Shown here piece by piece: positions 10,961 to 21,592 of a stretch of DNA of 64,000 bases (the stretch's first letter is position 1; each line of letters begins with the position of its first letter). The translations under genes were made by a program, and so were the position numbers. The notes below the pieces were generated by a model, which saw nothing but the letters and a program-made list of their open reading frames with translations, had not been told where the DNA came from and made no database searches. Source of the stretch: Heteronotia binoei (taxonomy: Eukaryota); assembly GCF_032191835.1 (NCBI RefSeq), contig NC_083236.1:45570001-45634000 (forward strand). Reading direction: 5' to 3'.

Positions 10961-11074
10961 TCAACCAAAGTTGTGCAGCGCTAGCCTGAACATGTCATTG
11001 GTGCAAACCCAAGCATCATTGAAGTTCTTTAATAGAAATATCTGGTGGAATCCCATAATAGGATCTTCATCGGC
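10961..11074 (-). CDS. NUTF2: NUTF2 canonical last coding exon (residues 91-127)
   Basis: [37 protein letters not shown]; pyrimidine tract and CAG acceptor at 11077-11075; phase 0. Confidence 0.97.
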
Positions 11075-14030
11075 CTGTGAAGAGAAAGAAAGACGTTTTA
11101 GAACCTCTCTGCCCCAGAAGATAAATCCTAGGAAGGAAATGCCTGCCAACGCTGTCATGCATTCTTCACCCTTCAGCAATAACAGCTGTGGTTCTGGCAC
11201 GCCTTTTACAATCCTGATGCAAAACTACAGGAAAGACTTGATAGCACTAGGATGGTGTTACACTCAGTGGCTCAGAAGGCATGTATAGCTCTGGGGCTTG
11301 TTTTGTGGCAGGAACTCCTTTGTATATTAGGCCACACACCCCAGATGTAGCCAATCTTCCCGGTGCTTACAGTAGGCCCTAATATGCAAATGAGTTCCTG
11401 CTACAAAAAAAGCCCTGTATAGCTCTATTCCACATGGCACTTGCCCCATGTTCCAGGAGAGCAGGCGATTTCTTTACAAACTGAAACATGATACAGCTGT
11501 CTTATTTTTAAAACACAACTTGTCCGTGATGATTACTATCAAGATTGTGCAGGTGTAGGGGTTTTGTGTCTGAGGCTAGGATGGGGCACACCAGTGTTGA
11601 ATGCTAGCCAATTAAAAAACACTCCCAGTAGTGGGGGAAGATACCTGCAGATGCTCAGAGGTAATCCAGTAATGAAAAAGCTGACATTATGCATTACTGT
11701 TCCCACACATTTGGGGTGGGATACCCAGGGCATACACAGTTGCACAGCTCTTTCTGTTGATGGAAATGGGAAATGTGGCTTTCCATGATCCACAGAGTGA
11801 ATACCATGGCACTACGGATTAGGTGGCGATCCATGATCACTATCAATTTTCACTGCATTCACAACACTGACTATCTCTGTTTATGGAAGGCTACAAATTA
11901 CAATGTCTGGAGATCCAGGGCAGCATTTTAAGAGCCACCGGAGGAGGCAGTATTGGGTTTGGCCAAGAGGAGTTAGTGCCAAACAGAATTAAGTTTAGCT
12001 GAAACATGCGGCTTCTTCCAACACTGATGAATTAAATGATGAGAATCATCTGTTTCCACAAGCCACATTTGTGGCCTTGCTGAAACGAACCTGCTCACAC
12101 ACTAGGAGCACAAGGCATAGAACAGGGGTGGCCAAACTTGCTTAATGTAAGAGCCACATAGAATAAATGTCAGATGTCTGAAAGCTGCAAGACATGAACG
12201 TCAGGTGTTTGAGAGCCGGGAAGGAAGACAGATGGGGGGAGGGAGATGTGGAAAGAAAACAACTTTATCTTTAAATGTGTTCTCCAGGCTGGCCAATGAG
12301 GCAGTGGGGGCTTTGAGAGCCACACAATGTGTGAAAGAGCCACATGTGGTTCTCGAGCCACAGTTTGGCCACCCCTGGCATAGAGCATAAAAAAGTTAAG
12401 GCTATAAAAGGCATGGAGAGTTGCTGAATATCCAAGTATTTGAAGGGGGGGGTGGTGTATCTTTACTAGAACTGCCAACATCTTTCTCTGGGATAAGGCA
12501 GGCTACCAAGAACAGGCCCAACATCTTTCCCAACTAGATCACAACAAAATTTGCTGCAGCAAGACTGGAAGATAGCACTTTTCATTTAAGACCCACTGAG
12601 GCAAAAACCATGACTTCTAAGCTGCCTCTGAATTACCACCATCTTCATTTCAGAGGAGGCGGAAATGCATGTAGCGCCCTACAGTTCAATTTCCATATTT
12701 TTTTCCTCATGCAAACACAAAGCCTAGTTGGCAAATGAATGCGGCAAGCCTGGTGTTCAGACACAAGCAAGCTGCAATCAGATCTTCAGAAGGCTTCTGT
12801 TCACAGTCAAATATGATTGTATCCTGAACCGGACAGAGTCTCTGCACTGGTTCTAAGAAACCTGCATCAATCAAGGCAAAAATAAAACTAAAATACAAAC
12901 CTGTCGCATGCCTTTCCATGCTCCATACATACATTTATTTACATCATTTATATCCCACCTTTTCCCCCCAATGGGGACCCAAAGTGGCTTACGCTGATCG
13001 CCTCTCCTCCACTGAATCCTTAACAACAATCCTGTGAGGTAGACGATGCAGAGAGCATGTGACTAGCCCAAGGTCACCCAAACAGCTTCCATGGCAGAGT
13101 GTGGAGTCAAACCTGGGGACCCCAGACCATAGTCAGAGACTCTAAGCGCTACACCAAGCTGGCACATAAATGCACAGATATTGTACGGAAGCCCTCTCTG
13201 TTCAGAGGATGAAGCAAGTCAGAATGCTGCAAGAAGCATTGACCTGCGGAGGAAGTAATACAAAAGTGGTTCCTAAAAAGCAGAGCCCTTACACACAAAC
13301 AAGGATTTCATATAACCGCACAGCTTCAGTTCCTCTCCCAGATTATTAGCAGCCACAACAAGGTGCAGGTAGCCACTGCTTCATGCTGCATATTCCAAGG
13401 GAACTTTTTAATGCAAACTCATCGACTTAACAGCCACCTGACACCAAGCCCAGGTTGGTGCAAATACATTTGCCTACATTCACACCTTGTTTGCCTGGCA
13501 TGTCCTTCTGTTGCTTCCTTGGCACTACCGAAATTCATGTAAAGGTAAGCCTCTTGGAGGTGTCTTTCCACTTGAGCTCCTCTGTACAACACCATGCACA
13601 CATGCAGCCCATGGTTTGTTTCTAACCTGCCCCTGGCTCAGGTACGTCTCCTTGAACTAACAGAACAATTGCAGACATGCCCAAGGAAAACAGGCTTAAG
13701 ATCAGACAGTTTCAAATGCAAAAGATACGAACGCTCACTGTGCACAGAACTTCTCAGATCTCGAAGCAACTCTGAGCAGGTAAGTTAAGCAAGCAACTGA
13801 ATGGGGCAGCATGAAACAGATAGGCAGCTCTGCTGAATTAATTCCAGGGCCACCACTTCCAGGAAGAAGATGGCATCTGCTCGTTTCAGAAGCCGCAACC
13901 CTGCTTCGGTAACACACAAGCCACGGCCATGCTGTTCAGACCGAAGGACCAATCACGGCAAACAGCACCAAGCAAAGAGCTTCTTACTCATTGAGGACGG
14001 CAAAGGTCAGAGGTAGGAGGAGGCCGGAAG

Positions 14031-14141
14031 CTAAACATTGTGGAGTGCTAGCCTGAAGACTTCATTGGTGCACACCCAGGCACATTGCAAGTTTTTCAAC
14101 AAAAAGGTCTGGTGGAAGCCTAAAATTTGGTCATCATCTGC
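14031..14141 (-). CDS. NUTF2: NUTF2 duplicated alternative last coding exon (paralogous C-terminus)
   Basis: [36 protein letters not shown]; 26/36 residues identical to the canonical exon. Acceptor tttctctcctgttctgctcag, phase 0 like the exon-4 donor, no frameshift or internal stop. Confidence 0.85.
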
Positions 14142-15733
14142 CTGAGCAGAACAGGAGAGAAACCATTACCAGACAGATACGATCTGAAGTTGCAGAACGC
14201 CACTGCCCTTACTGGACTCTGTTATGAGAAGGGGCCACTGTGTGCATGAAAAGCCCGGATGCTCCTGCACGCGTCCCTGGCAATGTGCACAGACACCTCT
14301 CAGGAGCCTAATCTTAGAGGAGAAGCACTAAAAAGGTAAAGGTAATCCCCTGTGCAAGCAGCAGTCATTTCCAACTTTGGGGTGACGTTGCTTTCACGTT
14401 TTTATGAAAGATTTTTTACAGGGTGGTTTGCCATTGCCTTCCCCAGTCTGTATCAAATTTAAGAGGTCCTGCAGTCACCTCCTAAATCTGAGATAGCTAA
14501 TTTTTCTTTTTTTGTATTTAGAGGCCCCTCTTAGTCTATAGAAGCCCCATGGTGCTTCTATAGTGGTAAGTTGCAGTACCGCCGTCCAAGCTCTACTCAC
14601 AACCAGTGTTCCCTCTAAGCTGAGTGTGAGCTAGCTCACAGCTTTTTAGCTTCCAGTTCACACATTTTTGTCTTCGCTCAGGAAAAATGGCCCCAAAGCA
14701 AACTAATTTATGCATTCACTCACAACTTTTAATGCCAGTAGCTCATGAAGCAGAATTTTTGCCCACAAGACTCCACAGCTTGGAGGGACTATTGCTCATG
14801 ACCTGAGTTCGATCCTGGCGGAAGTTAGGTTCAGGTAGCCAGAACAAGGCTGACTCAGCCCTCCATCCTTCAGAGGTCAGTAAAATGAGTACCCATCTTG
14901 CTGGGGGCAAAGTGTAGATGACTGGGGAAGGCAGTGGCAAACCACCTCGTAAAAGTCTGCCAAGAAAAGGTCGTGATGTGACATCACCCCATGGGTCACA
15001 ATGACTCGGTGCTTGAACAAGGGATTACCTTTACCTTACATAGTCTGAGGTGCTAAACAACTATCACTTACTCAGCTTGCATGTAAATCTGTCTCTGTCT
15101 CCATGAATCTGAATCATGCTCCCTAACACTAGCTTATATAGTTTTGTTTCACCTTGCTAAGTAAAGCTGTTTTTGGAAGACACTATGTGTTGAAAAGTGG
15201 TACATAAAGAACATGACAAATAAGCAAATGCTACTTGTGCTGAGATGGTTATCCTTCCAGTTGCTTCTTTCTCTTCTTTCAACAAAGAGAAAAGTGAGGC
15301 ATTTGGAATGAACGTTTTACTTACTGGGCATTTAAAATGAGCAGTGTAAAAAATTTTTTAAAAAGGCTCTTCCAAAGCCTTCCATGTTCTATCATGGCAG
15401 CTACAAAAGACCACAATTATATACTGAAGCCTAAATGACTTCCTTGTTTCACCCCTGTGAGGCATGAGGATCTTTCCATTCATTCTCATAAGACGTACTA
15501 TAACCTTCAAATAATCCTTCCAAATGCCTCTTTGTCAAAAACATCTGCTTGCAAAAGCCAACTGGGGCAAGAACTCGTCTGAGCAGGAAAAGCGAATCTT
15601 CCTCTCAACCAGGAATTGGCTCTTCCATCACCCATCAGATGTCACTTGCACTGCCAAAACAATGTGCCCTCAACATACAAGTGGTCCTCCAAACAGCGAC
15701 GCACAGGGTTCAGTGGTTTGAGGAAACATTTAC

Positions 15734-15832
15734 CTTAAGCTGTCCAACTACCATACTGAGTATACAGCTGTCGGGTGTGGGCTGATGGTCTTGTGCAGTG
15801 ATGCTGTGCTGTATTTTCTGAAAAGGGAGGCT
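15734..15832 (-). CDS. NUTF2: NUTF2 coding exon (residues 58-90)
   Basis: [33 protein letters not shown]; cag acceptor, gtaaat donor; 99 nt. Confidence 0.97.
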
Positions 15833-18156: not shown

Positions 18157-18228
18157 GGAGAGTTTTTCAACAATAGCTGCTTTGCCCTGAAATTGTTGTC
18201 CTTCCCACGTAAGGCATGAGGCGTCTAT
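18157..18228 (-). CDS. NUTF2: NUTF2 coding exon (residues 34-57)
   Basis: [24 protein letters not shown]; cag acceptor, gtgagt donor; 72 nt. Confidence 0.97.
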
Positions 18229-20461
18229 CTGTAATAATGAAAGAGACATGTGGTCATAAGTCTGCTTGGGAAAGGGAGAGGTCCTTTACACAAAATGACA
18301 ATTATCAGACTACAGTTCTTCACACGCTGGCAAATTGACTGAGAAGCAAGACCGAACCACGTTGGGAGGGCATAGGAAAGCATCAAATGGCTTGAGGGAT
18401 GGAATTCCTCCTACCCAAGACAACTACCCAGTTGTAGTCCTGCAAGTGTCATACTTTTCTCTTCTTTCATTTCAGGCTGGCTGTCTCACACCCTTGCTTG
18501 GGTCAAAGTAATACAATTGTGTCACTGAATATTTCCTCCCTGTTTTTTTTCTCAGATCTGAGCACTTATGCACCGACTAGCAGCTTTTGGGCCAAATCTA
18601 GCTCTCTTAAGGGTGCTGCTCCCCCTACCCCCATGCCATTTATCAAACAAGTGGCAAAAACAATGGAGAAAACAGTATCTGTGAAAACAGATATGGCTGG
18701 CTGCCTTGAAAAACATGGTATTATAAACCTTGCCAATATTAAAGCCATAAGAACATAAGAGAAGCCATGTTGGATCAGGCCAATGGCCCATCCAGTCCAA
18801 CACTCTGTCACACAATGACCAACAAAACCCAGGTGCCATCAGGAGGTCCACTAGTGAGGCCAGGACACTAAAAGCCCTCTCACTGTTGCCCCCTCCAAGC
18901 ACCAAGAATACAGGGCATCACTTGCCTCAGACAGAGAGTTCCATCTGTACCTTGTGGCTAATAGCCACTGATGGACCCCTGTTCCATATGTTTAGCCAAT
19001 CCCCTCTTGAAGCTGGCAATACTTGTAGCTGCCACCACCTCCTGTGGCAGTGAATTCCATGTATTAATCACCCTTTGGGTGAAGAAGTACTTCCTTTTAT
19101 CCATTCTAACCTGACCAGCAATTTCATAGAGTGCCCATGAGTTCTTATATTGTGAGAAAGGGAGAAGAGTACTTTTTTCTCTACCTTCTCTATCCTATGC
19201 ATAGTCTTGTAAAAGACAAGCTACTTAAATTTATACCACAAATTACAGTATTAAATGAAACATACTGGGGACGAAGATACCAAAACAATGAACTAAGAAG
19301 GGCCCCGAAGTCTGTAACATAACCGATTCACCAAATGATCAGTCAACCACCAACCTGATTACACCCATTCCGCTGGCTTCCCTAGTAAAGCATTCACCAT
19401 AAGAGCTCCCCTCCCCCTTTTAAAGGCAGCTGCTGAGATCCTTCTTTCCCACAAATTTTTTACAACGCAGATGCCAATTGTCATTCATCACCAACAGAAA
19501 AAGCACACCAATTGTTCTAAGCAGCTGCGATTCACCTCTTAGCCTTGCTTTTCCAGATTTTTAAAATTTTATTTACAATCTCCACACCAGCTGGTACTTA
19601 AAAGTATTCACTGACGAAGCGTCAGATGCTCTGCTGTGAGTGGAATGTTGCAAGTAGTATCAGGAAGTCTTCTATCTTCAGGCGCGCAGCCTGATGAGCT
19701 TAGCAATCTCCCACACATTTCGAGAACCATCAAAAAAATTTTGAGAACAGGGTGCCTTTTTAAAATCCTCTCCAGGAAACTGCTGTCAAGTTAAGTCAGA
19801 CTCTCCTATCCTGCTCCCTAGCTCTCTGCACTCTGGGCTGCTCAAAGCTCTGCGAAGACACCTCCCTTTATTCAACACACAGCTTTATGGCTCAGTTGGC
19901 AGCACCTCCCAGGAGCAAAACATAAATGCTTTAAGCCATCAGTTCTAAACTTCTTGAAGTGGGACTCGCAAAATTTATTCCACCTTTTCAGGACCTACTT
20001 GGATCTCAGCTAAGACAGCCACCGGTCCCCAAAGCAACAGGTACAAATTATGCCAGTCGCTTCCCATGCCAGTGGCAGCCGGGAGGGAGCAGGCTGAACT
20101 CCTGCAGACTGGCAGTGCCACAAGCAAGGGGCTTGACTTAGACTGACGCGTGGCAGTGTGAGTCAGGAGATGACTGCAGGTTATGCCTCCTGCACCGCAA
20201 ATGGTGCCATCTGATCCCTTGGGAAATGAGTGGTATCCACAGGGGAAAGAAGAGCAGAAGACAACAATGGGGGCACCTCTGCCCCCTCTTCTTCTTCCAC
20301 CCCAGCAAGCTTGCAAAAAAAAAAAAACTCTTGCAAGATGTTGAGCCTCATGGTGCAGTTCTGAGCTACAATCACAGGTGCAGAACCACGGCTTAAGACC
20401 AAACAGCTAAAACTCTTCTTTGTGGAATTGCTTAGGATCTTTGGAGTTGAATCCAAAGGTA

Positions 20462-21154
20462 CCGTATTTTTCGGACCATAAGACGCACTCCCCCCCCCCA
20501 AAAAAAGTGTGTGTGGGGGGGAAGTGTGTGCGTCTTATGGAGCGAAGGTACGTATCTTCTGGGGGGGGCAATCCGCTGCCTCTGCCTCCGATCCAGCGCT
20601 TCCCCCGCACCTCCCTGCCTGGCTCCATCCTCTTCCAGCAAGCGCTGGGATCGCTCCACATGGCCCCACCGCAAACCCAGCACTTCGCGAGCGCCGGCTG
20701 TGGAGATGGCAGCGTGCTTCCTCCTTGTCTGTCTGCCTGGCTCCACCTCTGATGCTTAAAGCAAGCGCTGGGATCGCTCCCTCCGCCCCCCAATCCCAGC
20801 GCTTGCTTTAAGCATCACAGCTGAAGCCAGGCACACAGGCAAGGAGGAAGCACCCGCCCCCTCCGCAAACCCAGTGCTTCGTAAGCATCAGAGGTGGAGC
20901 CAGGCAGACAGACAAGGAGGAAGCACGCTGCCCTCTCCACAGCCAGCGCTCGCGAAGCGCTGGGTTTGCGGTGGGGCCCCGCTTGCTGGAAGAAGATGGA
21001 GCCAGGCAGGGAGGCGCGGTGGAAGCGCCGGATCGAAGGCAGAGGCAGCGGATCCCCCCCCAGAAGGTACGTACCTTCGCTCCATAAGACGCACACACTT
21101 TCCCCCCCACTTTTTTTTGGGGGGGGAGTGCATCTTATGGTCCGAAAAATACGG
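20462..21154. mobile_element. Foldback Tc2/pogo-type MITE
   Basis: TIR CCGTATTTTTCGGACCATAAGA at both ends with TA flanks; arms of about 290 bp; inner perfect 25-bp hairpin at 20750-20817. Confidence 0.85.
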
Positions 21155-21493
21155 TACCTTTGGATTCAACTCCAAAGATCCTAAGCAATTCCACAAAGAC
21201 TTGCACAGAAAACAGCCGATTCTGTGTCTGAACAAGAAAAGTTTATGTATAAGTGCTGCAGATATTAGGGGGGGACACATTCAGTCTTGCTTGTACTTCC
21301 ACTGTTGCAGGTAACAGGTTGATCTTTCTGGCCTCCTTCCAAAATAAAGCATTGTTGGGGGGGCTTACTGACCTGTCTACTTTCATTCTTTCCCAAGGAA
21401 ACAGAGAAGTGCTGATGCATTTGTGGAAAAAAGAAGAACCAGTGAGCAATCGTTCGAAAGAGCCAAAGAAATCTCATCCCAGAAACTACTTAC

Positions 21494-21592
21494 ATATATT
21501 GCTCCTAATTGAGTCCTGTCTGTATCAAATAACTGGTAGTAATGCTGTACAAAGCTAGAACCAATCTGCTCCCAAATGGGCTTGTCTCCCAT
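21494..21592 (-). CDS. NUTF2: NUTF2 first coding exon (residues 1-33); exon starts at about 21618 with 5'UTR
   Basis: [33 protein letters not shown] then gtaag donor; upstream acceptor cttttcctttatttcag. Confidence 0.97.

Follow-up and report, generated by a model that had tools for sequence, protein, structure and literature searches.

NUTF2, the gene encoding NTF2, lies on the reverse strand of the window, a stretch of 64,000 nucleotides from Heteronotia binoei (RefSeq assembly GCF_032191835.1, contig NC_083236.1, positions 45,570,001 to 45,634,000 of the forward strand). In addition to its constitutive coding exons, the gene contains a further exon, which follows the third coding exon and precedes the normal last exon, shares their strand and has a phase-0 acceptor (Table 1). 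Directly 5' of this exon a pyrimidine tract runs into the sequence ...ctgctcAG. An earlier note, made from the sequence alone, had described an intact exon of 36 codons with an acceptor in the right phase, and translation of 14141..14031 on the reverse strand returned exactly that peptide and its stop codon. The exon is called the cassette below, and the protein ending in its 36 residues the alternative isoform.

Table 1. NUTF2 exons, splice sites and a conserved intronic block in the window (position 1 is the first letter of the window).
Feature	Position	Strand	Remarks
NUTF2 coding exon 1	21494..21592	-	start ATG at 21592
NUTF2 coding exon 2	18157..18228	-	
Upstream constitutive coding exon (third), SLPFQ...GQLK	15734..15832	-	ends GQLK|gtaaat, phase 0; donor 15733 would join 14141
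Cassette 3' splice site	14142..14165	-	pyrimidine tract tttctctcctgttctgctc and AG (14143-14142), phase 0
Cassette exon, whole, 154 nt	13988..14141	-	36 codons, stop and tail; end set by the conserved donor, matching the cDNA layout
Cassette coding part, 36 codons	14141-14034	-	sequence and frame read directly
Cassette stop TAG	14033-14031	-	
Cassette non-coding tail, 43 nt	14030-13988	-	cDNA contigs L001 and L003 have a like layout, with tails of 42 and 51 nt
Cassette 5' splice site GTAAGA	13982..13987	-	exon side ...ATGA|; donor GT = 13987-13986; invariant GA|GTAAG
Conserved intronic block with GCATG (13932-13928, intron +56)	13911..13940	-	candidate splicing enhancer of the RBFOX type; a GU-rich run comes next
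Normal last coding exon, ADEDPIMGF...HNFG and stop	10961..11074	-	acceptor cag|GCC, phase 0; would be 3' UTR when the cassette is included

The cassette and the normal last exon are homologous copies. The counts given earlier were reproduced: 26 of 36 residues are identical, and 11 of these are encoded by different codons. At the nucleotide level 80 of the 108 bases agree. The 100 nt flanking each copy are not alignable, with ungapped identities of 31% and 22%, which is the level of chance. Taken together, these values indicate that the duplication is old and that the coding part alone was kept. The differences P95Q, M97L, I102T, D117E, M118V and F126V and the absence of G127 had all been listed correctly, but E93D, F108L, N109Q and D110C had been omitted. 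The possibility that the exon is a fragment of a retrocopy was ruled out: an intronic acceptor of its own precedes it, and it is not fused to sequence from any upstream exon.

Intron 1 of NUTF2 contains a large, nearly perfect palindrome (window 20417-21199). Its arms of 89, 54, 82 and 97 nt are 91-97% complementary and nested around a centre at ~20780-20880, and they give rise to long spurious open reading frames on both strands. The palindrome is probably an inverted pair of a repeat element.

Distribution, selection and age

The protein collection was searched with the spliced product as the query, and residues 84-126 alone were scored. The alternative C-terminus was found annotated in birds, a lacertid lizard, frogs, axolotl, a caecilian, bichir, cyprinids, sharks, a skate and a chimaera. 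More than 100 birds carry it; the entries comprise one 79-member cluster, UniProt A0A803VFC1 (74 passerines), A0A663EH55 (37 birds) and isoform X2 of Hirundo rustica. The lacertid entries (P0057) are RefSeq XP_033014822.1, isoform X2 of Lacerta agilis, and A0A670IK40 of Podarcis muralis, an Ensembl/UniProt entry. In frogs, sharks, a skate and carp the isoform is represented by X2 or X3 gene models. The exon had been presented as hidden, and these Lacerta, Podarcis and bird entries speak against that. The caveat attached to the same claim, that the exon might appear as a predicted isoform in sauropsid annotations, was well placed. As a sequence feature, the alternative C-terminus is already known at the annotation level, where it was predicted by pipelines. 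The isoform X2 entries are computational models without a described function, and a literature search found no paper describing this isoform.

The predicted isoform X2 (126 aa) agrees with the window in gene, exon position and type of 36-residue C-terminus, including the diagnostic residues Q95, L97, E117 and V118 and the ending HN[VLI]. In the window the exon has 36 intact codons and a stop, Q95, L97, E117, a residue of the V/I type at 118, an aliphatic residue at 126 and no G127; among the columns used to recognise orthologues, E117 and 126 also served for sorting, and the independent ones are 95, 97, 110 and 118. The lacertid alternative exon (P0057) is identical to that of the window at 34 of 36 residues, and the other exons are identical. 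The two differences are N107 for S and C110 for G. Codon 110 (14082-14084) reads TGT (Cys) in the window and GGT (Gly) in the lacertid, the turtle and the examined birds. Both changes lie on the variable 107-110 loop and are lineage-specific.

The exon is also present where it was not annotated. A tblastn search with the cassette peptide detected an orthologous turtle exon (E=5e-20). At this snapping-turtle locus the exon is intact and unannotated, and the turtle gene model uses the normal exon. In the snapping turtle and at 16 bird genomic loci the intact exon has the same two neighbouring exons, and it precedes the normal exon by 3.9-4.3 kb.

In the NUTF2 locus of the leopard cat no remnant of the exon was detectable in the 1.8-kb last intron, and the protein search returned no mammalian protein with an alternative-type tail. 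An earlier remark that no such exon is known in mammalian NUTF2 agrees with the leopard-cat locus. EDC4 is found 2.3 kb downstream of NUTF2 in this species. Among ray-finned fishes, the alternative-type tails of gar (Lepisosteus oculatus, P0114) and of salmonids (Oncorhynchus mykiss, P0097 and P0150) have diverged strongly or are degenerate. In part of this group constraint may thus have been relaxed or the exon lost, and the degenerate look of these exons implies that the exon can be lost.

Two other kinds of sequence were encountered during these searches. Mammalian models labelled isoform X1 (P0102-P0105; 150-155 aa) have an insertion before the SLPFQ exon (...LFLLQ|SLPFQ), unrelated to the alternative tail. 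A separate 'NTF2-like' paralogue, whose tail ends in ...NDIFRLALYNFA, is found in geckos, lacertids, snakes, turtles and a marsupial (P0142, P0158, P0160, P0169, P0173), and this tail is distinct from the alternative NUTF2 exon.

Nei-Gojobori estimates of dN/dS for the cassette were 0.10-0.14 when the window was compared with birds, 0.13 for bird groups compared with each other and 0.13-0.25 for tetrapods compared with fishes. In the same comparisons the normal exon gave 0.02-0.05. The differences between the window and bird cassettes fall mostly at codon position 3 (6 of 9 and 8 of 12). Within a species, dS between the cassette and the normal exon is saturated. The cassette dN/dS of 0.10-0.25 indicates that selection acts on the protein: the peptide is under purifying selection, somewhat weaker than that on the constitutive exon. 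These values, together with the presence of the exon from sharks to birds, bear out the earlier view of an old duplicate kept by purifying selection. A decaying pseudo-exon is ruled out by the dN/dS values and the intact splice sites.

In a tree of the 36-37-residue segments, every alternative exon, whatever the taxon, fell on the same side of a branch with a support of 87/76. The same split was recovered in 84% of bootstrap trees, from an alignment with few columns. The lamprey and hagfish exons were placed near the split between alternative and normal exons. The exon has been kept under selection since before the split of sharks and bony vertebrates.

Splicing of the cassette and predicted fate of its mRNA

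Direct evidence of splicing comes from three short intronless Logan contigs that were found by exact-protein look-up: L001 and L002 match the skate isoform P0078 and L003 the cyprinid isoform P0061. These contain, in order, coding exons 1-3, the cassette with its stop, a tail whose length is 42 nt in the skate and 51 nt in the cyprinid, and the normal last exon. The spliced mRNA of the skate and the cyprinid thus includes the exon at an internal position, and the normal last exon serves as 3' UTR. The earlier proposal that splicing chooses between two C-termini of NTF2 is upheld by this cDNA from two fishes and by gene models in a lizard and in birds.

Genomic donor and GCATG positions were compared at 18 sauropsid loci (the window, the turtle and 16 birds). 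The donor GA|GTAAGA is located 43 nt past the cassette stop in the window. The motif GA|GTAAG does not vary among the window, the turtle (L021) and the 16 bird loci, and lies 42-47 nt after the stop in the turtle and the birds. The acceptor TGCTCAG|GCAGA is kept in the window, the turtle and 14 of the 16 birds; the other two birds have TGCTTAG, and AG is found in all. The internal position of the exon in the window is inferred from the conserved donor.

The earlier note had treated the cassette as an alternative last exon. Such an exon, mutually exclusive with the normal one and supplied with its own 3' UTR and poly(A) site, would account for the terminal stop codon and for the many annotation models that end the coding sequence there and are silent on what follows. 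However, all three cDNA contigs run from the cassette into the normal last exon, the donor past the stop is invariant at all 18 loci, and in the window the first AATAAA or ATTAAA past the cassette stop is 618 nt away. A terminal exon is therefore an improbable explanation, and an internal cassette is preferred.

Several annotated proteins combine parts of both exons. In Antrostomus (P0001) and in isoform X2 of Bombina bombina (P0002) the gene models join the cassette and the normal exon in frame. In Bombina bombina X3 (P0020) the normal exon is read out of frame after the cassette. Isoform X8 of Scyliorhinus torazame (P0082) is a model of the same odd kind, with an in-frame join or an out-of-frame normal exon. 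The cassette layout explains the odd models P0001, P0002 and P0020. All four models hint at extra donors inside or just before the cassette stop, or else at annotation artefacts.

Among Logan contigs, cDNA containing the full alternative isoform was recovered from neither birds nor reptiles. A search with the upstream exon plus the cassette for partial reptile or bird cDNA-derived proteins returned genomic read-through ORFs (P0045, P0215, P0216, P0218) and gene models only. The exact 126-residue product of the window and the X2 proteins of a lizard (P0057), a toad (P0064), a frog (P0062) and a shark (P0081) had no match in the assembly index, because the index covers the longest product per gene. 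Since no bird or reptile contig was found, support in sauropsids comes from gene models and sequence conservation, and inclusion of the cassette there may be low or restricted, for example by tissue.

Sequencing runs were also compared with the window by shared words. Twenty small runs from eight organisms each contain 9-25% of the sampled 31-mers of window 13900-14300, and none contains the intron; the shared words are probably the conserved exon. In small, probably RNA runs of two related organisms the share is 16-19% of the sampled words (unaligned), about that expected if exon-sized pieces alone are present, which is a weak hint of transcription. The runs of one further organism contain 72% of the words of the normal exon and UTR (unaligned, and likewise a weak hint).

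It could be argued that in Heteronotia binoei the exon is a relic, still intact and no longer spliced in, and G110C is indeed unique to the window. Nevertheless, the open reading frame is intact, as are both splice sites and the GCATG block, an isoform X2 is modelled in the closest annotated relative, and the 16-19% of words in the probable RNA runs (unaligned) is roughly an exon-sized share. A relic is very unlikely. An exon still in use as a cassette is the reading followed below.

A stop normally does not trigger nonsense-mediated decay (NMD) when the last exon junction follows within about 50-55 nt. The cassette stop precedes the last junction by 43 nt in the window; the turtle and birds have 42-47 nt, the skate 42 nt and carp 51 nt. 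A stop at most 51 nt from the last junction predicts that the cassette-containing mRNA escapes NMD and is stable and translated. The sequence of the non-coding tail is poorly conserved. Conservation of its length and not of its sequence would fit selection for a translatable mRNA.

The opposite outcome was also considered, in which inclusion would expose the mRNA to NMD and tune the level of NTF2, the peptide being irrelevant. A stop-containing cassette upstream of the last junction with a conserved flanking intron is what regulated unproductive splicing uses, and the failure to find full-length alternative cDNA in birds and reptiles points the same way. Against such a poison exon speak the conservation at the protein level (dN/dS 0.10-0.25, changes at third positions, a poorly conserved tail), the distance of 42-51 nt between stop and junction, which stays below the usual NMD threshold in every lineage seen, and the recovery of the alternative form as an assembled full-length contig in two fish samples. 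We regard a poison exon as unlikely, and return to a cassette that encodes a protein.

Regulation of inclusion is suggested by the downstream intron. Within an otherwise barely alignable intron, the block 13940-13911 is conserved between lizard, turtle and birds and contains the invariant AGCATGGC. Inside this motif all 18 sauropsid loci have GCATG, at intron positions +47 to +58, preceded by A and not by U; RBFOX sites are looked for within ~300 nt downstream of an exon. In the window, GCATG occurs four times in the first 400 nt of the downstream intron versus once in the 1592-nt upstream intron. An RBFOX enhancer classically consists of GCAUG located downstream of a cassette exon. The conserved position of GCATG thus predicts tissue-specific inclusion of an RBFOX type, which would be highest in brain, heart and skeletal muscle.

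Ran pocket and dimer interface

Canonical NTF2 structures from rat and human are represented by PDB 1OUN, 1GY6 and 5BXQ, and the complex with RanGDP by 1A2K. For the alternative protein, 28 distinct non-degenerate alternative tails were compared with 41 distinct canonical tails. Residue 95 is mostly Q in the alternative tails and mostly P in the canonical ones. Residue 97 is L or I versus M or I, and residue 118 is V or I versus M (V in 6 of the 41 canonical tails). The acidic side chain of residue 110 is lost in the alternative tails. D117E and a single aliphatic residue replacing the terminal FG were also seen; both columns had been used for sorting and are not independent.

The pocket that receives Phe72 of Ran consists of W41, L59, F61, I64, L89, A91, M97, F119 and L121 and is ringed by E42, D92 and D94, as seen in structure 1A2K (PMC3549806). 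The C-terminal hydrophobic peptide of NTF2 also touches Ran (PMC3549806). Judged against this list, the alternative isoform keeps all pocket and acidic residues save for M97L. From the alternative exon itself come A91, D92, D94, F119 and L121, which are kept, and the altered M97 and C-terminal peptide. Translation confirmed the earlier observation that D92 and D94 are retained.

Pairing of the two forms was modelled with canonical bird NTF2 (P0085) and the lizard alternative isoform (P0057). The heterodimer scored 0.86 and the best control 0.00, a pass that may only reflect likeness to known structures, or memory of them, because NTF2 dimers have been solved. Among solved complexes, 51 of 78 reached the mark used, and among mismatched pairs 2 of 108. 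The heterodimer runs agree in at least 88% of contacts, with a partner pLDDT of 90. The modelled interface includes residues 98, 100, 102, 104, 106, 115, 116, 118, 120 and 122, in line with the earlier assignment of positions 102 and 118 to the dimer interface. The model says nothing on affinity. A different change at one of these positions, M118E, reportedly breaks the NTF2 dimer, a result attributed to Chaillan-Huntington et al. in 2001 and to PDB entries 1JB2, 1JB4 and 1JB5.

A probable ancient C-terminal switch and its known counterparts

The reading that best accounts for these results is that window 14141-13988 on the reverse strand is the orthologue of an ancient NUTF2 cassette exon, which bears a stop, is alternatively included and yields a 126-residue isoform. 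We put the probability of this at roughly 0.8. The cassette would have arisen by tandem duplication of the last NUTF2 coding exon before the divergence of jawed vertebrates. With the cassette spliced in after the third coding exon and ahead of the normal last exon, its 36 codons would replace NTF2 residues 91-127; translation would end at the cassette stop and the normal last exon would become 3' UTR. The predicted product is a 126-residue NTF2 that keeps the Ran-contacting A91, D92, D94, F119 and L121. It would always have M97L and D117E, changes at interface positions 102 and 118, and one residue (V, L or I) instead of the terminal FG. With the stop held 42-51 nt upstream of the final junction, inside the NMD-safe zone of ~50-55 nt, a stable translated mRNA would result. 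The weak exonic side of the donor and the conserved GCAUG block downstream probably serve to regulate inclusion, which would then follow an RBFOX-type tissue pattern.

The integrity and conservation of the exon, purifying selection on it, its splice sites and its use as a cassette in the cDNA of two distant fishes are directly supported. We infer its use in Heteronotia binoei, and likewise, from distances and motifs, its escape from NMD and its control by RBFOX. A changed Ran binding or dimer strength of the alternative isoform, and a tuning of import by tissue, are conjecture.

A wider reading is tentative, and we hold it at slightly less than even odds. Non-mammalian jawed vertebrates would possess a second, functionally distinct NTF2, with its C-terminal third exchanged through the cassette. 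Inclusion of the cassette would be driven by a conserved intronic element of the RBFOX type, its stop would have stayed in the NMD-safe zone for more than 400 million years, and it would have been lost in at least placental mammals. A change in dimer stability, in the pocket for Ran switch II or in the C-terminal contact would tune RanGDP import by tissue.

To our knowledge, NTF2 is the only dedicated RanGDP importer and has been regarded as having a single isoform, since functional and structural work was all done on the mammalian or yeast protein. Conserved between sharks and birds and absent from a mammal, the alternative C-terminus touches both the dimer interface and the Ran pocket. The isoform is very old and appears unstudied. 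If true, its loss in placental mammals would explain why it went unstudied. As a natural variant, it could be used to ask how dimer stability and Ran affinity set the rates of nuclear import. The cassette would also be a clean example of a stop-containing exon kept within an NMD-safe distance.

Compared with canonical NTF2, residues 1-90 of the alternative isoform are the same apart from three conservative changes. The alternative tail, like the canonical one, keeps A91, D92, D94, G98-Q101, W112-N116 and F119-N125. The Pfam NTF2 domain was scored on the alternative proteins as it is for canonical NTF2, and the model predicts that the isoform pairs with canonical NTF2 through the usual beta-sheet interface. 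Unlike canonical NTF2, the isoform has M97L in the Ran Phe72 pocket, D117E, and T102 and V118 at the interface. In addition, the charge of D110 is lost and the C-terminal FG is replaced by one aliphatic residue.

Among known types of regulated exons, NMD-coupled poison exons are also internal, contain an in-frame stop and are flanked by a conserved intron. The cassette differs from these in that its stop is at most 51 nt from the last junction and its codons are under purifying selection, and on both grounds it behaves like a protein-coding C-terminal switch. Mutually exclusive tandem exons share with the cassette an origin by tandem duplication, great age and the rule that the two homologous segments are never both present in the protein. 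In the cassette, by contrast, exclusivity at the protein level comes from the stop codon and not from mutually exclusive splicing, because the cDNA contigs contain both exons in one mRNA.
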